Positions 8,058-21,728 of a stretch of 64,000 bases of DNA are shown piece after piece. Within the stretch, counting starts at the first letter, position 1, and every line of letters starts with the position of its first letter. The translations under genes and the position numbers were made by a program. Below the pieces are notes generated by a model that was given only the letters and a program-made list of their open reading frames with translations, made no database searches and had not been told where the DNA came from. The stretch lies in the sequence record ON190025.1; one strand, 5' to 3'.

Positions 8058-8084
8058 AAAAAAGGGCGCTATTTGCGCCCTTTT
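8058..8084 (-). terminator. Rho-independent terminator
   Basis: GGGCGC/GCGCCC stem flanked by A6 and T4. Confidence 0.75.
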
Positions 8085-8593
8085 GTTTTTTGTTTCTTTG
8101 CTTTTCGTTTAGCCCGTCTAAGTTCTTTTCGTTTAGCGATTTTATCTGCTCTTCGAACTGCGTCGTAATCAGCAGCACAAGACGCAGCAAACGCATCAGG
8201 TTTGAACACGGGCTCTTGACCAACATATCCCAATATAGTACCTTTAGCTTCGTTATAGGCAACGTGAGATTTGTGTGTAGGGTCAGGGTTGATGTCAACG
8301 TGAACTTCAAAGCCTCTAGTACCGCACATTGGCTTAACCATTAGTGCAGTTTCACCCGCTTTGTATACTTCATTCATCAATCGACTTCTGATACCATCTT
8401 TACATGATAAGTATGCAGGTTCAGTCTCAACTGCTTTAAACACTTGAGCACCTTTACTACCTTCAAGATGAATTATGATCACAGTCGCGTAACTAATCAT
8501 GTCACTTTTACGCTTACTATCACACCCAACGTATATTGTGCTATTTGGATGACTGTTATTGATAGCTGTTTCTATCGCTTCCCAATCGAACAT
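8069..8593 (-). CDS. RNase H-fold protein, YkuK/DUF458-like
   Basis: IYVGCDS, YATVIIIH, EVHVDIN and KPDAFAASCAAD motifs; basic C-terminal tail; GAGG SD before ATG 8593. Confidence 0.75.
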   Translation of the reverse strand: MFDWEAIETAINNSHPNSTIYVGCDSKRKSDMISYATVIIIHLEGSKGAQVFKAVETEPAYLSCKDGIRSRLMNEVYKAGETALMVKPMCGTRGFEVHVDINPDPTHKSHVAYNEAKGTILGYVGQEPVFKPDAFAASCAADYDAVRRADKIAKRKELRRAKRKAKKQKTKGRK

Positions 8594-8606
8594 TTTCACC
8601 TCTTAC

Positions 8607-8642: not shown

Positions 8643-10079
8643 TTAAAAGCTGTAGCGTTCGACGCCTACAGTTTTCATCATGATCTTGACTGGCTCAAGC
8701 TCACCACTCAACAGTGAAGTCAAGATAGATGGGCTACAACCAGATACCAGTGCAGTGCCCGCTTCGCCAGCTTTAACCGGAACGTTGCCAAGACGACCAC
8801 GAATGTTCCAAAAGACCAGTTGTGGCATTTCATAACCAGCACGTGCGTACTTGGCTTTGATTGCATCGAAGTTCGCAGGTTCACCGCGACCGTACCATCC
8901 ACCACCAGTGTTTGCTTGATCGAATTCCATGTCACTCATGATAAGCAACTTGGTTGGCATATCTTCTTGTGAAAGATTTGCACGCTTCGCACGTTCTAAC
9001 AGAACATCAAAGCACTTACCGATGTTCGTGCTCATGTCTTCGCCTGAACGATTCATGTTATCAAGACGCTCTTTCAATGAAGAGCCGCGCAACTGGTGGA
9101 AGTGCGGGTCGCTTGAGAACGAAATGAACTGATCTTTGAAGATGCCTTCATTGCGTTCAGCAACATAAATCCCAAGAGACATTGCAACTTGCTTACAAGT
9201 CACACCTGAATGGTCTGTACCTGCGTTAATTGGCGTGCTCATAGAGCCAGACACGTCAACAACAGGGATGATGCGTTCATCAGAACCTTCCATGTAGTTT
9301 GGCAGAGCTTTCCATTGCTCGTTCGCTACAGACGCATTACCGTGACTAACGCTCTTAACGACATCGTATGGGAACAGTGCGCCAGCGTTGATCTTCGCTT
9401 CACCTTTTTGAAGTGACTCGATGTAGCTTGTGTAACGAGCTGAAGCGTTACGACCGAATGCTTGTTGATAACGAGCAGACGCTACAGAAGGCAACTTACC
9501 GAAGTCGATTGCATCCCATTTTTGCGCACACATCTTCTGCTCAACAGTGTCAGACAGAAGCGACAGAATCTTACGCCACTGCTTCGCAGTTACGCCAAGA
9601 GACTTGATTGTGCGCTTGAACACATGACCGTTTTTGCTGTTTTCACGTGGGAACCACTTCGCAGCAAGACCATTCTTGTCATTGACAATTGCGTTCGACC
9701 ACATTGTAATCGCATCTTTTTCAAGACGTGTACCGAAAGCAGAAATCAAGTCATCGTAACGACCTAGTTCTGGAATTTTCGACATTACAGCACGAGCTAC
9801 GTCAGGCTGTTCATTACAAAGTTTAGTGAATAGTGTACGGAAAGTACCACGTTCACCCGCACCACCTCGAACGTCACGAGACCACAAAAGAATGCGAGTC
9901 GCTAGTTCTGGGTTTTCTGCAAACGCACGACCGAACAGCGTTTTAGACTGATCGTTGCCACGCATAGCAGCAATACCGAAGAACAAGTTTAGACACTCGT
10001 TACCTGAAGTGCTGTGAGTAACTGCACCGTTTGCTGTGCGTGAATCGTTTGTTTGCATTGCGTTCATAAATACTGACAT
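8643..10079 (-). CDS. DUF2828-family protein (helical TROVE/Ro60-like N-terminal region plus C-terminal vWA)
   Basis: TANGAVTHSTSGNECLNLFF, RDVRGGAGER, LAAKWFPRE, KINAGALFPY; MIDAS DVSGSM, SDMEFD, VFWNIR. The TROVE relationship is inferred. Confidence 0.85.
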   Translation of the reverse strand: MSVFMNAMQTNDSRTANGAVTHSTSGNECLNLFFGIAAMRGNDQSKTLFGRAFAENPELATRILLWSRDVRGGAGERGTFRTLFTKLCNEQPDVARAVMSKIPELGRYDDLISAFGTRLEKDAITMWSNAIVNDKNGLAAKWFPRENSKNGHVFKRTIKSLGVTAKQWRKILSLLSDTVEQKMCAQKWDAIDFGKLPSVASARYQQAFGRNASARYTSYIESLQKGEAKINAGALFPYDVVKSVSHGNASVANEQWKALPNYMEGSDERIIPVVDVSGSMSTPINAGTDHSGVTCKQVAMSLGIYVAERNEGIFKDQFISFSSDPHFHQLRGSSLKERLDNMNRSGEDMSTNIGKCFDVLLERAKRANLSQEDMPTKLLIMSDMEFDQANTGGGWYGRGEPANFDAIKAKYARAGYEMPQLVFWNIRGRLGNVPVKAGEAGTALVSGCSPSILTSLLSGELEPVKIMMKTVGVERYSF

Positions 10080-10115
10080 TGTTCATTTCCTCATAATTAA
10101 TTGCTGTAAAATGTC
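10075..10115 (-). promoter_or_regulatory. 5' UTR copy of the helix-NN-NCWGCAA motif pairing over the DUF2828 start codon
   Basis: GACATT-TT-ACAGCAA-TTAATTATGAGGAAATGAAC-AATGTC; AATGTC contains the ATG and the GAGG SD is in the loop. Confidence 0.8.
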
Positions 10116-12868: not shown

Positions 12869-13113
12869 AGACATTCGAGAAGTGTTTTATCGTCTTTCCT
12901 TAAATCTCATTTGACTATAACGATGTTTCTCATCGGAAAAATACTCATGTTTCGGCATGAGTCCTATTTCGTTTGACAGTACGAACACCGTCTTAATGGT
13001 CATTTCCTACCACGAGAATGCGACAGGCTCACGTCATCACTGAGAAAGCAGCTAGTGCGCCTCATTACTATTAAAGTTTGCTTTGATTTTGTAATGATTG
13101 CTGTACAATGTCT
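12869..13113 (-). ncRNA. ~245 nt structured RNA closed by the motif helix
   Basis: AGACATT-GT-ACAGCAA...AATGTCT; internal hairpins TCATTAC/GTAATGA, ACTCATG/CATGAGT, CGATG/CATCG, TTCGT/ACGAA; no ORF in the track. Confidence 0.75.
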
Positions 13114-14857: not shown

Positions 14858-15085
14858 AGACAATACCGAAGTGTTTTTTCGTCTTTTGCATAAATCGGAG
14901 TTGACTAGCTTATTGATTCTCAACAAGCAAATATCGTCTGTTTCAGCGACGCGCCTATCTGACTATTTCTAGACAGAGAGAATCTTTCCTTTCAAGCTGC
15001 GCCTAAGCAAGCTCAGGTTAAAATCAGCCCAGGTTAAGATCATCACTTCTTTTAAGTAATTTCAATTGTTTGCTGTATATTGTCT
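14858..15085 (-). ncRNA. ~228 nt structured RNA closed by the motif helix, paralogous to 12869-13113
   Basis: AGACAAT-AT-ACAGCAA...ATTGTCT; shares AAGACGAWAAAACACTTC (17/18) and AGTGATGA with the 12869 RNA. Confidence 0.75.
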
Positions 15086-15298: not shown

Positions 15299-15373
15299 TG
15301 GTGGACACGCAGGGAGTCGAACCCTATCTTCCTCATTGCAAGTGAGGCGCTTTCCCAATTAAGCTAACGGCCC
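15299..15373 (-). tRNA. tRNA-Ala(TGC), irregular acceptor stem
   Basis: G3.U70 present; inner acceptor pairs mismatched or bulged. Confidence 0.85.
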
Positions 15374-15380
15374 ATATTTT

Positions 15381-15590
15381 TTACAACTGTGTGATTGAAA
15401 TATATTCCCAACCGTATAAACCTTCAAGTTCTTCAATCGGCTCACTAACAATGTCAGAAATATATTCAGCAACTTTTGCTTCAACTTCTTCATTAGATAA
15501 TTCTTCACTAACGGAAAAAACATCTTCGTTATTGTTGCCACCGAAATCCCCACCAATGTCATATTCACACCATACAGAAATATAGTTCAT
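15381..15590 (-). CDS. Small acidic hypothetical protein
   Basis: MNYISVWCEYDIGG..., 69 aa. Confidence 0.65.
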   Translation of the reverse strand: MNYISVWCEYDIGGDFGGNNNEDVFSVSEELSNEEVEAKVAEYISDIVSEPIEELEGLYGWEYISITQL

Positions 15591-15614
15591 GTTATTCTCG
15601 CAGTTGTTTGAAAA

Positions 15615-15690
15615 TGGTGCCCTGACACGGATTCGAACCGCGAACCTGCTCATTACAAGTGAGCTGCACTGCCAGTTGTGCTATCAGGGC
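15615..15690 (-). tRNA. tRNA-Thr(TGT)
   Basis: Cloverleaf, CCA. Confidence 0.95.
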
Positions 15691-15696
15691 GTTACT

Positions 15697-15808
15697 GAGT
15701 GTTATTACTAGCGTCGTCCAGACCAGTGATACCAACACTGAAAGGGAATCGAACCCTAAACATTTCTTTCCGATAAGAATATTAGTAAATTGTTTGCTGA
15801 AAACACTC
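15697..15808 (-). ncRNA. YrlA-like circularly permuted tRNA mimic (candidate phage Y RNA)
   Basis: GAGTGT-TT-TCAGCAA...AGGG-TTCGATT-CCCT (T arm), CAGTG-TTGGTAT-CACTG (closed acceptor), GTC-TGGAC-GAC (D arm)...ACACTC. Confidence 0.75.
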
Positions 15809-15817
15809 TTCGGTATT

Positions 15818-15891
15818 TGGCTGGGGATAACAGATTCGAACTGATACCAACGCATTCAAAGTACGTTATGCTGCCTTTACACCAATCCCCA
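15818..15891 (-). tRNA. tRNA-Gln(TTG)
   Basis: U1-A72, G73, CCA. Confidence 0.95.
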
Positions 15892-15910
15892 ATTGTTCTT
15901 AAATTATCTT

Positions 15911-15986
15911 TGGCGGAACCGACGGGTTTCGAACCCGCTACCTTCTCCGTGACAGGGAGACATGCAACCACTTACACCTCGGCTCC
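15911..15986 (-). tRNA. tRNA-Asp(GTC)
   Basis: Cloverleaf, CCA. Confidence 0.95.
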
Positions 15987-16054
15987 CCAAAGACAACTTA
16001 AAGTAGTTGCTTTGTTTTTCAAGTTCACACTTAACGGTAGTGACTCTCCGAATT

Positions 16055-16130
16055 TGGCGCTTCATGTTGGACTCGAACCAACGACTCTCTGATTAACAGT
16101 CAGACACTCTACCAACTGAGTTAATGAAGC
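16055..16130 (-). tRNA. tRNA-Asn(GTT) copy 1
   Basis: Cloverleaf, CCA. Confidence 0.95.
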
Positions 16131-16218: not shown

Positions 16219-16276
16219 AGTAATCCTTTTTGCTTTTTCCAAATAAAAGTTTTGTATTGTTTGCTGTAAGATTACT
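16219..16276 (-). ncRNA. 58 nt RNA consisting mainly of the motif
   Basis: AGTAATC-TT-ACAGCAA...GCAAAAAG-GATTACT. Confidence 0.7.
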
Positions 16277-18941: not shown

Positions 18942-19057
18942 TGGTAGTCGGGGCTGGATTCGAACCAGCGACCACGTGCTTAACAGGCAATTGAAGGAGT
19001 GCTGGAGCGATACTTGTCAGTATCATTCTTCGTGCTCTACCACTGAGCTACCCGACT
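18942..19057 (-). ncRNA. tRNA-shaped RNA, anticodon loop replaced by a motif-bearing insert (CCA present)
   Basis: AGTCGGG/CCCGACT-A-CCA, normal D and T arms; insert GATACT-GACA-AGTATC-GCT-CCAGCAC. Confidence 0.75.
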
Positions 19058-19840: not shown

Positions 19841-19965
19841 TGGTGGAGAGTACGGGATTTGAACCACGTGACAAAAAGATTTACCTAGTTATTAAGGTTT
19901 GCAGCATGAATGCTTGTCAGTATTCTTTAACATTCTTTTGCTCTACCAGACTGAGCTAACTCTCC
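19841..19965 (-). ncRNA. tRNA-shaped RNA with motif-bearing insert (CCA present)
   Basis: GGAGAGT/ACTCTCC-A-CCA; AAAAGA/TCTTTT stem encloses GAATACT-GACA-AGCATTC-AT-GCTGCAA. Confidence 0.75.
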
Positions 19966-19975
19966 GGAATTTGAA

Positions 19976-20088
19976 GGTGAAGTGCAGGACTCGAACCTGC
20001 GACCTCCGGCGTGCATGTGAATGCAGAATGAAATCTTATCAGACTTCGTTTTTTGGCCGGCGTTCTAACCTACTGAACTAACTTCACC
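19976..20088 (-). ncRNA. tRNA-shaped RNA with motif-bearing insert (no CCA)
   Basis: GGTGAAGT/ACTTCACC; insert AAAAAAC-GAAGTCT-GATA-AGATTTC-AT-TCTGCAT. Confidence 0.75.
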
Positions 20089-20484: not shown

Positions 20485-20607
20485 TGGTCGAGTGTAACGG
20501 AATCGAACCGTTCCCACGATCTCCCTATGATATGCGTAAATTGGTTGCTGAATATAATCATGTCTGATTACAGTATGCTACGTGTGCTGCCACTACACCA
20601 ACACTCG
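20485..20607 (-). ncRNA. tRNA-shaped RNA with motif-bearing insert (CCA; acceptor extends to 21 bp); paralogue of 20104
   Basis: CGAGTGT/ACACTCG-A-CCA; insert GTAATC-AGACAT-GATTAT-AT-TCAGCAA. Confidence 0.75.
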
Positions 20608-20622
20608 ACCAATATACTCTCG

Positions 20623-20773
20623 ATATTTTAAATGTGCGCTACTTGCACGCCGACTGAGCGAATTTTAACTCAGCTAGTTTTTGATTGAGAATTCGTCCGC
20701 TAAGAGTATCCCTGCACGCCAGAACGTATACTGGCTCCATGTATTCATTGCGGCTAACGCACATTTAAAATAT
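20623..20773 (-). ncRNA. ~150 nt RNA closed by a perfect 16 bp stem
   Basis: ATATTTTAAATGTGCG/CGCACATTTAAAATAT; internal GCCAG/CTGGC and CTGAG/CTCAG hairpins; GGCGTGCA twice. Confidence 0.6.
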
Positions 20774-21025: not shown

Positions 21026-21280
21026 TTATACTGAAAGAATGATACCGCTTTCTGTCTCACCTCGTTCAAGCGCAGCGTGCTTGATTTGAAGCTGAGATAC
21101 AGCTTGTTGAAGCTCAGTGATAGCTTTATCGTAAAGTTTGTTGTTCTCTTTAAGTAAAGCAATCTGATCGGTCTGCATACCGATGATATACGTCAATAAT
21201 ACAACGTTCTCTTCAGTAGTTAGAGTTTCGGGAGCTTCATTGTACTTCTTTAATACTGCTTCAGTAGATAAATCAGTCAT
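21026..21280 (-). CDS. Coiled-coil hypothetical protein
   Basis: MTDLSTEAVLKK..., 84 aa, overlaps the 57B stop. Confidence 0.7.
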   Translation of the reverse strand: MTDLSTEAVLKKYNEAPETLTTEENVVLLTYIIGMQTDQIALLKENNKLYDKAITELQQAVSQLQIKHAALERGETESGIILSV

Positions 21281-21728
21281 TACTATCAACCCAATTTAAA
21301 TCAAGTGGTTCAAGATATTCATCAACAAGCCGAACTTCAGCGTTGACGGGCATAGGTGTGATCGCGTCGTCATAAGACAACGTAACGTGAGGGGTATAGT
21401 CAGGGTAGTCGTGAGTACCACCGATAGAGATAAGATCATCGTGACGTTCTACAAGTTCTGGACATACCATCTTAGCAACAACTGCATATTTGCCGTCTTG
21501 CGTTTTCCAACAGTCGATATGTTCAACAGTAGCAACGAAAGTGGTATCGACAACAGGTACATCAATTTGCTTACGACTATAAAGCACAGTCACGTGAAAT
21601 TTATCTGGTTCTAACGGATTTTTTAGACGAAGCGTTTTCTGCAATCGAACTAACTCTTGCTTACTCGCCTCGTCTAATCTGATACCAACGTAAGTTCCCT
21701 GACTTTCAAGGAACTTAGATAGTTTCAT
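21273..21728 (-). CDS. 57B: 2H-phosphoesterase, T4 gp57B homologue
   Basis: Two HxT motifs (FHVTVLYS, PHVTLSY); position beside 57A. Confidence 0.85.
   Translation of the reverse strand: MKLSKFLESQGTYVGIRLDEASKQELVRLQKTLRLKNPLEPDKFHVTVLYSRKQIDVPVVDTTFVATVEHIDCWKTQDGKYAVVAKMVCPELVERHDDLISIGGTHDYPDYTPHVTLSYDDAITPMPVNAEVRLVDEYLEPLDLNWVDSND

Follow-up and report, generated by a model that had tools for sequence, protein, structure and literature searches.

A permuted tRNA-like RNA in the tRNA array of a KVP40-like Vibrio phage and its probable YrlA-like role beside a DUF2828 protein

The DNA analysed here, called the window below, is a stretch of 64,000 nucleotides (nt) of sequence record ON190025.1 and comes from a KVP40-like Vibrio phage (Schizotequatrovirus, Straboviridae). 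Its minus strand carries a tRNA array in which ARAGORN called 28 tRNAs and Rfam gave 31 tRNA matches, and within this array, between tRNA-Gln and tRNA-Thr, lies the 112-nt element that is the subject of this work. A preliminary description made from the sequence had interpreted it as a circularly permuted tRNA mimic resembling the bacterial Y RNAs of the YrlA type; all the segments it listed were found on the minus strand where it had placed them. The element starts 9 nt past the encoded CCA of tRNA-Gln and ends 6 nt ahead of tRNA-Thr, and no promoter- or terminator-like sites bracketing it were detected beyond chance. The surrounding region (15400-16100) is 100 % identical to that of Vibrio phages vB_ValM_R11Z, Va3 and PVA23, 100 % identical over the 94 % covered to that of phi-ST2, 99.7 % identical to that of VH7D and approximately 92 % identical to that of KVP40. 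The element, its parts and its two neighbours are as follows.

15818-15891, minus strand: tRNA-Gln, the upstream neighbour (ARAGORN, Rfam).
15697-15808, minus strand: the whole element, a permuted tRNA-like RNA of 112 nt with five helices (sequence, covariation, and a score of 142.5 bits with the covariance model R1 introduced below).
15802-15808, minus strand: 5' strand of the terminal helix, GAGUGUU, whose partner is 15697-15703 (pairing kept in relatives).
15792-15801, minus strand: the UU-CAGCAA-AC motif (UUCAGCAAAC), directly 3' of this helix strand (invariant in the KVP40 group).
15764-15779, minus strand: a small hairpin, UUCUU-AUCGGA-AAGAA, at the position of the variable arm (stem invariant in the KVP40 group, covarying family-wide).
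15743-15757, minus strand: T arm, AGGG-UUCGAUU-CCCU (canonical T loop, compensatory changes in the stem).
15724-15740, minus strand: acceptor-like hairpin, CAGUG-UUGGUAU-CACUG, with a closing loop of 7 nt (compensatory changes).
15713-15723, minus strand: reduced D arm, GUC-UGGAC-GAC, with GG in the loop (pairs kept in 9/9 relatives).
15697-15712, minus strand: 3' linker GCUAGUAAU and AACACUC, the 3' strand of the terminal helix (15703-15697) (sequence, pairing).
15615-15690, minus strand: tRNA-Thr, the downstream neighbour (ARAGORN, Rfam).

The T arm is followed by an acceptor stem sealed by a loop and then by the D arm, and the element's own 5'/3' terminal helix replaces the anticodon arm. 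This order, recognised already in the preliminary description, agrees with that published for YrlA (PMC4201824) and with RF02553, the Rfam YrlA model. The five helices are given by the minimum free energy fold of the element. In copies of the KVP40 type the acceptor comprises 5 base pairs (bp), U8/N9 are absent and the D stem has 3 bp. As had been predicted, tRNA scanners miss the element: it was called neither by ARAGORN nor by the Rfam tRNA model (RF00005), even at E ≤ 10. A tRNA is expected to show a cloverleaf in standard order, an anticodon arm and a free acceptor end; here the anticodon arm is missing and the acceptor is closed by a loop. No Rfam family matched the element at the gathering threshold or, over 15500-16000, at E ≤ 10.

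The element was found in 30 records of KVP40-like Vibrio phages at 81-100 % identity, mostly unannotated, and its immediate flanks are variable among these phages. In an alignment of the nine distinct versions, 216 of 216 pair cells hold a standard base pair (100 %), in comparison to 49-67 % when the 3' partners were slid by 1-3 columns, and compensatory changes occur at 4 pairs. The fourth pair of the T stem is A-U, G-U, G-C or C-G and the third is G-C, G-U or A-U; two pairs of the acceptor hairpin switch, one between U-A and A-U and the other between C-G and U-A. The terminal helix is kept in all nine versions, with one U-A to U-G change, and so are the pairs of the D arm, with a U-A to U-G change in nt-1. 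The loop of the variable-arm hairpin differs in length and sequence within the KVP40 group, and the loops and short flanks of the nine versions vary and carry indels of 1 and 2 nt. RNAalifold returned the same helices from the alignment alone. The structure of the element is regarded as established by these data and those on distant relatives, which bear out the expectation of conserved and covarying stems in related phages.

A covariance model (R1) built from the nine versions recovered the orthologue of a more distant Vibrio phage, D482, at 73 bits, and it detected clear homologues in Ralstonia phage RSP15 of the Ackermannviridae (54 bits) and Salmonella phage Felix O1 of the Ounavirinae (35.6 bits). 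The sequence of the terminal helix is wholly changed in the distant homologues yet remains complementary (GGAUAG/CUAUCC in RSP15, GACCGUU/AACGGUC in Felix O1, GAGUGU/ACACUC in the window), and in both RSP15 and Felix O1 the helices follow one another as in the window, with T loop and CAGCAA motif retained. A scan of IMG/VR with an exact pattern (CAGCAAA, 25-55 nt, GGTTCGANTCC), followed by R1, gave many further homologues, most of them far more tRNA-like than the window copy. In such canonical relatives a 5-bp T stem abuts a 6-8-bp acceptor stem with a short closing loop, after which come U-A (U8-A9), a D arm of the form GCUC-AGUUGGUA-GAGC or GUGU-AAUGGUA-GCAC, an A-rich strand and the closing helix. 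Across 46 R1 matches from diverse phages, in an alignment fitted to the model, 96.2 % of cells pair versus 60.7 % in shuffled sequences, and compensatory changes are seen at 23 of 24 pairs, including all 7 of the terminal helix and all 5 of the variable-arm hairpin. The Rfam YrlA model, applied to the relatives' core of T arm, acceptor stem (AS) and D arm, scored 27-39 bits, with E down to 1.9e-7.

On the same strand as the element, and 5.6 kb away from it in the window, there is the gene of the presumed protein partner of the RNA.

8643-10079, minus strand: gene of a DUF2828+DUF7788 protein, orthologue of KVP40.0300 (Pfam DUF7788, 1.6e-46; DUF2828, 2.7e-29).

KVP40.0300 is annotated as an 'RNA-binding protein'. 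In other phages, DUF2828 genes are abutted by RNAs of 52-62 nt that carry the terminal helix and CAGCAA and have no tRNA-like part. Since such minimal members exist, it is the shared module and not tRNA mimicry that defines the family; terminal helix and CAGCAA constitute a handle common to all its RNAs, to which different cargo domains are attached, the permuted tRNA among them. The helix+CAGCAA family was defined in this analysis and not taken over from a published one.

The linkage between handle and gene was approached from both sides. Among 118 IMG/VR loci chosen by the RNA pattern only, local tblastn with the DUF2828 protein of the window revealed a DUF2828 gene in the flank of 22, mostly directly adjacent and on the same strand. 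The converse set comprised 80 IMG/VR loci chosen by the protein only (42-53 % identity), and these were scanned for a 7-bp helix starting with A-G-R, 1-3 nt, CAGCAA and a complementary strand within 240 nt, with at most one G-U pair. This strict scan replaced a lax one based on a 6-bp helix, which had given about 60 matches in shuffled sequences and 117 on the opposite strand. On the gene strand it detected 88 elements; the opposite strand gave 2 and shuffled sequences 0-4. At least one was contained in 42 of the 80 loci, and in 40 loci one lay within 1 kb of the gene. There were 1-5 strict elements per locus, 52-251 nt long (median 73); 45 of the 88 were located downstream of the DUF2828 gene and 14 had a T loop. 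Mycobacterium phage Snenia carries three RNAs downstream of the gene, the middle one being a full permuted tRNA mimic, and E. coli phage EC6 (Felixounavirus) has four downstream; three lie upstream in Listeria phage LMTA-57 and two in Campylobacter phage PC14. The hosts of phages with such same-strand adjacency are Proteobacteria, Firmicutes, Actinobacteria and Campylobacter. A scan of genome contigs with a single protein yielded 3 bacterial or archaeal loci, all of them with CAGCAA RNAs.

The module consensus derived from the 88 elements is A-G-R-N(4-5)-U-W-CAGCAA-W ... A-rich ... Y-C-U, then G, with a terminal helix of 7-8 bp in family members. The window element reads A-AGAGUGU-UUU-CAGCAAAC ... 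GUAAUA-ACACUC-A-G and departs from the consensus solely at the outermost pair. It has both marks by which the family is recognised, the helix+CAGCAA module and a DUF2828 gene on its own strand in the phage. A plain search of the window for the 15-nt motif, allowing up to 3 mismatches, was uninformative (6 matches versus 3 expected).

An AlphaFold2 model of the DUF2828 protein was built on 16 homologues, with a predicted local distance difference test (pLDDT) of 80 and a predicted template modelling score (pTM) of 0.76. When it was compared with the PDB by Foldseek, the 8 best matches were all Ro60/TROVE structures (E = 3.5e-9 to 1.6e-6), including those of phage phiLo (9KOP, 9L5Y), Xenopus (1YVR, 2I91), Deinococcus (2NVO) and a Ro60/La complex (9NFA). 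The alignments were full length, covering 510-590 columns with a template modelling (TM) score of 0.5-0.6, and the next matches were vWA domains only, at E ≥ 2e-3. The DUF2828 protein accordingly models as a Ro60 fold, i.e. a HEAT-repeat ring with a C-terminal vWA domain. Its homologues occur in at least 711 deposited phage records, with Felix O1-like, KVP40-like, Listeria, Staphylococcus, Campylobacter and mycobacterial phages among the carriers; some mycobacteriophage records label the gene 'Ro-like RNA binding protein'. In the literature searched, to which access was partial, DUF2828 was nowhere discussed together with RNA.

Ro60-Y RNA particles are known from animals, some bacteria and a few phages, as exemplified by the metazoan Y RNAs and by Deinococcus Yrn1, which acts with PNPase (RYPER). 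Thermus phage phiLo encodes a Ro60 with Yrl1/Yrl2 (PMC12135203). The system described here resembles these particles in its ring-shaped HEAT-repeat and vWA protein, as modelled (matches to 9KOP, 1YVR, 2NVO and 2I91), in its modular small RNAs that combine a motif-bearing terminal stem with a variable 'effector' module, and in the existence of phage-encoded examples. It differs in that the DUF2828 protein lacks sequence-level similarity to Ro60, the RNA motif is another one, and the cargo is much more diverse (minimal hairpin, permuted tRNA, domains of 150-250 nt).

The closest comparison is that with YrlA (RF02553), a tRNA-like Y RNA of Salmonella, Mycobacterium, other bacteria and TROVE-encoding mycobacteriophages, which is encoded on the same strand as the TROVE gene and within about 4 kb of it (PMC4201824). 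YrlA is defined by the motif GNCGAAN0-1G near the 5' end, the presumed Ro60 site, and by four stem-loops in the order V, T, AS (the closed acceptor) and D; it is bound by Ro60/Rsr in cells, is acted on by RNase P, TruB and DusA and carries tRNA-type modifications, with pseudouridine introduced by TruB and dihydrouridine by DusA (PMC4201824). The Rfam consensus has the order V-T-AS-D enclosed by stacked stems. The window element likewise has paired 5' and 3' ends, a V hairpin, T arm, closed acceptor and D arm in this order, and a short conserved motif near the 5' end as a presumed protein site, with CAGCAA at the position of GNCGAAN0-1G. Furthermore, the RNAs of its family share a strand with the gene of a ring protein modelled as Ro60-type and mostly lie near it, at 5.6 kb in the window, and there are often several of them per locus, comparable to YrlA/YrlB. 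However, the family motif is UW-CAGCAA without GNCGAAN0-1G (UUCAGCAAAC stands at that site in the element), a single 7-8-bp terminal helix takes the place of the stacked stems, the partner is a DUF2828/DUF7788 protein and not a Pfam TROVE protein, and the acceptor stem and D arm of the KVP40 copy are reduced. The element is YrlA-like in anatomy and context and is not a member of Rfam YrlA, since it gives no Rfam match at E ≤ 10 and lacks the GNCGAA motif. The link to Y-RNA biology drawn in the preliminary description is supported by the handle beside same-strand DUF2828 genes and by the Ro60 fold of the protein model, and qualified by the absence of GNCGAA and by a partner outside Pfam TROVE.

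Two further kinds of RNA invite comparison. Species 1 and 2 RNAs of T4 (rnaC and rnaD) are small stable RNAs in a syntenic tRNA cluster of a related Straboviridae phage; according to annotation they are released by tRNA processing, and the last part of rnaC consists of a T arm and an acceptor-like 3' terminus. They differ from the element in having no terminal helix+CAGCAA module and no permuted order. Homology was rejected when R1, run with filters off, gave no match at T4 70908-71171 (locus L130 2909-3172). Circularly permuted tRNA genes are present in the red alga Cyanidioschyzon and in some archaea, and two-piece or permuted tmRNA is known as well. The element shares with them the encoding of the 3' half of the tRNA body ahead of the 5' half. 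Those RNAs mature into working tRNA or tmRNA with an anticodon arm or tag reading frame and a free CCA end, whereas the element has a sealed acceptor and lacks an anticodon arm.

The most fitting description of the element is that of a permuted-tRNA member of a widespread family of Y-like phage RNAs associated with DUF2828. The explanation that we prefer for the whole, with a probability of roughly 70 %, is that it is the gene of a small non-coding RNA which works like a YrlA-type Y RNA. This explanation builds on the covarying five-helix structure, the membership in the handle family, the same-strand linkage to DUF2828 and the Ro60 fold of the protein model. In the mechanism we propose, the element would be co-transcribed with the phage tRNA cluster and released by the processing of its neighbours, the RNase P cut at the 5' end of tRNA-Thr defining its 3' side and the 3' maturation of tRNA-Gln its 5' side. 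The 7-bp terminal helix, the single-stranded UUCAGCAAAC and the A-rich 3' strand would form the shared handle, a putative binding site for the ring protein with DUF2828 and vWA encoded at 8643-10079, in the way that the stem of a Y RNA binds Ro60. The permuted body, composed of variable-arm hairpin, T arm, closed acceptor and D arm, may fold into a tRNA-like elbow through contacts between GG of the D loop and UUCGAUU of the T loop. Such an elbow would offer the shape of a tRNA to nucleases or to enzymes that bind tRNA and recruit, occupy or decoy a tRNA-recognising factor. The resulting ribonucleoprotein would probably tether, gate or decoy an RNA-processing or defence factor during infection, and its role would lie in RNA metabolism or counter-defence.

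Several results weigh against this explanation. The folding energy of the element is ordinary for its composition (z = -0.99; 28 of 200 shuffled sequences are as stable), and for this reason comparative evidence was needed. The Rfam YrlA search that had been suggested as a check found no match on the window copy at E ≤ 10, and the 27-39 bits of its relatives are to be set against a gathering threshold of 69. The KVP40 version is a trimmed form with the most degenerate tRNA body within the family, and its terminal helix has A.A instead of the usual outermost A-U pair. The element is situated inside the tRNA array, 5.6 kb from the protein gene and not adjacent to it, and about half of the protein-anchored loci failed the strict scan; these may contain divergent motifs or RNAs beyond the flank. 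On the protein side, Pfam gave no TROVE (PF05731) match to the DUF2828 protein, phmmer against PDB sequences found designed armadillo repeats only and no Ro60, and the likeness to Ro60 rests on a predicted model with TM 0.5-0.6.

The main alternative is a structured RNA family that acts without DUF2828, for example as a decoy or sponge for host nucleases or modifying enzymes that target tRNA or as a 'punctuation' element in the processing of polycistronic tRNA/mRNA transcripts, in which case CAGCAA and the conserved U|AG...CU|G boundaries would be nuclease recognition sites. We regard it as unlikely. In its favour, the copies in the window are interspersed with tRNAs at a distance of 3-11 kb from the DUF2828 gene, the conserved ends of family members (an A-G-R start, and Y-C-U followed by G at the end) could mark cleavage sites, and a tRNA-like body lends itself to being a substrate or decoy for tRNA enzymes (PMC4201824). 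Against it stand the minimal 52-62-nt members without any tRNA-like part and the same-strand adjacency to DUF2828 across phages of four bacterial phyla, including loci without a nearby tRNA; this adjacency is otherwise hard to explain and argues for the protein and the RNAs working together. Another reading is that the helix+CAGCAA RNAs mainly regulate DUF2828, the protein repressing its own mRNA through a look-alike in the 5' untranslated region (UTR), the RNAs titrating the protein and the tRNA body providing stability only. The leader of the DUF2828 gene, GACAUU-UU-ACAGCAA...AAUGUC, holds the start codon and the Shine-Dalgarno sequence and is conserved in KVP40, and in several other phages a CAGCAA element lies directly ahead of the DUF2828 ribosome-binding site. 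That leader hairpin is weak, however (-4.2 kcal/mol, z = +0.31), and was compared in two close phages only; the RNAs are often downstream of the gene (45/88), and an elaborate conserved cargo such as the permuted tRNA is left unexplained. Regulation as the main role is improbable for these reasons, and it is compatible with a YrlA-like function rather than exclusive of it.

Two readings remain, and both are made very improbable by the lack of an anticodon arm and by the covariation seen in the closed acceptor hairpin. The idea of a decaying remnant without a function of its own, either a pseudogene of a tRNA or two formerly tandem tRNAs fused at their junction, with the T arm and 3' acceptor strand of the first and the 5' acceptor strand and D arm of the second, draws on the dense array with its several annotated pseudo-tRNAs, on the reduced D arm and acceptor stem of the element, and on the ability of tRNA-tRNA junctions to mimic the YrlA order, as seen in a YrlA model match at 19940-20004. 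It is very hard to reconcile with acceptor strands that pair across a 7-nt loop and covary, with conservation of the element at 81-100 % in KVP40-like phages while the flanks vary, and with homologues in unrelated phage families that share its five helices and its non-tRNA motif. Least probable of all is a true permuted tRNA gene, from which a functional, aminoacylatable tRNA would arise by circularisation and renewed cutting of the transcript, as in some algae and archaea. The T arm and the 3' strand of the acceptor do precede the 5' strand of the acceptor and the D arm, as such a gene would have them, but a terminal helix with CAGCAA occupies the place of the anticodon stem-loop, the family has minimal members without a tRNA part, the acceptor stem has 5 bp only, no CCA or discriminator is discernible in its closing loop, and no bulge-helix-bulge motif was seen in the element.

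A wider reading, held at roughly even odds, is that the element belongs to a large phage class of 'Y-like' RNAs in which a common handle docks on DUF2828 and the cargo is interchangeable, the whole serving as a general device against host RNA enzymes or defences; the cargo of this class would comprise a bare hairpin, a permuted tRNA, possibly a tRNA in normal order with the handle in its anticodon arm, and domains of 150-250 nt. Three more members of the handle family are present in the window.

16220-16275, minus strand: second member, a minimal 56-nt RNA with terminal helix, ACAGCAAAC and a small hairpin, between tRNA-Trp and tRNA-Asn (z = -2.34).
14858-15085, minus strand: third member, 226-228 nt, AGACAAUA-UA-CAGCAAAC ... 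UAUUGUCU (strict motif scan).
12869-13113, minus strand: fourth member, 245 nt, AGACAUU-GUA-CAGCAAU ... AAUGUCU-G, just downstream of tRNA-Ser (strict motif scan, sequence).

The 56-nt RNA has the size and shape of the 52-62-nt RNAs that abut DUF2828 genes elsewhere. The phage therefore carries at least four RNAs with a putative DUF2828 handle and a different cargo in each, or five when the RNA at about 20494-20624 (minus strand) is counted. The latter is a tRNA-like RNA in normal order that was called by neither ARAGORN nor Rfam. By eye, it has an apparent 9-bp acceptor (GUCGAGUGU/ACACUCGAC), a D arm GUGU-AGUGGCA-GCAC, a T arm and an encoded CCA, and a helix + UUCAGCAAC module seems to be placed at the site of the anticodon arm, which would make it the non-permuted counterpart of the element. 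The computed fold, made with slightly wrong boundaries, did not reproduce this structure. The sequence is 97-100 % conserved in KVP40-like phages and is annotated as tRNA-OTHER in two records.

Handle RNAs in tandem were seen in IMG/VR contig 3300025902_000314 (L060:7327-7666, minus strand), where a DUF2828 gene is immediately preceded by three of them: a permuted tRNA mimic, an RNA matched end to end by the Rfam YrlA model at 32 bits, and a 78-nt minimal form. In the window, the 5' UTR of the DUF2828 gene itself (about 10070-10109, minus strand) contains a GACAUU-UU-ACAGCAA-...-AAUGUC hairpin, conserved in KVP40, with the Shine-Dalgarno sequence in the loop and AUG in the 3' strand, and there is a -10-like box, TGTATAAT, upstream. 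It is possible that this leader hairpin is an autoregulatory operator mimicking the RNA handle.

Earlier reports of Ro60 and Y RNA in phages concern TROVE proteins (mycobacteriophages, CcrColossus, Bacillus phage G and phiLo), and a survey of jumbo phages mentions ROT/TROVE proteins with 'a tRNA-like partner' in general terms only. The RNA family is described neither in Rfam 15 nor in the literature searched, again with partial access. What comes nearest to it is the PhageMaP preprint, in which gp130 of Felixounavirus Bas63, a protein with a Ro60-like structure encoded directly upstream of tRNA genes, counters the Ppl defence system and the authors suggest that some of the Bas63 'tRNA genes' may be Y RNAs (preprint 10.1101/2024.10.10.617714). 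From the gene order in EC6 and Felix O1, gp130 is likely to be a DUF2828 orthologue, and Ppl defence is a possible lead to the role of the present system. The handle RNAs are candidate partners for the DUF2828 protein, whose likely orthologue reportedly counters a bacterial defence. More generally, the results suggest that the Ro60-Y RNA system has a second branch in phages that is far more widespread, in which a Ro60-fold protein not recognisable as TROVE, present in hundreds of genomes, is paired with an RNA family of its own that has a simple, searchable signature. They also account for several 'spacers', 'pseudo-tRNAs' and spurious hypothetical open reading frames (ORFs) in phage tRNA clusters, and they provide a natural series of RNAs with and without tRNA-like cargo in which the share of tRNA mimicry in Y-RNA function could be probed.

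Two ORFs, both delimited mechanically, overlap the element and the adjoining tRNAs.

15592-15855, minus strand: ORF of 87 codons.
15790-16092, plus strand: ORF of 100 codons.

'Hypothetical proteins' are annotated at the element in the GenBank records of R11Z, PVA23 and QD01. The overlapping ORFs were rejected as coding in view of frame-breaking indels of 1 and 2 nt among relatives and the overlap with tRNA-Thr, and the annotated proteins are almost certainly spurious.

The array holds other unusual tRNA-like genes. The minus-strand sequence at 15302-15373, an Rfam tRNA match of 44.9 bits that is absent from the ARAGORN calls, corresponds to KVP40 tRNA-Pseudo-1. Three genes of 112-122 nt (18945-19057, 19844-19965 and 19976-20087, minus strand) are the counterparts of KVP40 tRNA-Pseudo-3/4/5; their acceptor stem, D arm and T arm are normal and an insert of 44-54 nt takes the place of the anticodon loop. 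The inserts have a common hairpin with the loop CUGAYAAG, then CUGCA/CAGCA. Since T4 rnaD (locus L130 3054-3172) contains a similar hairpin, with the loop CUGAGUAA and then ACAGCAGAAAC, the three long pseudo-tRNAs may be relatives of T4 species 2 RNA rather than dead tRNAs. The local Rfam YrlA match of 32 bits at 19940-20004 (minus strand) spans the junction of two neighbouring tRNA-like genes. It was rejected as a Y RNA, being composed of the T arm and acceptor of one gene and the acceptor and D arm of the next; such dimeric tRNA junctions are a recognised class of false positives for YrlA (PMC4201824).

Two protein genes near the array were also noted. A small RNase H-like protein (PF04308) is encoded at 8069-8599 (minus strand), directly downstream of the DUF2828 gene, and a homologue of the anti-CBASS phosphodiesterase Acb1 (Pfam E = 8e-46) at 21273-21728 (minus strand), just past the tRNA array, so that the region mixes genes of counter-defence and RNA metabolism.

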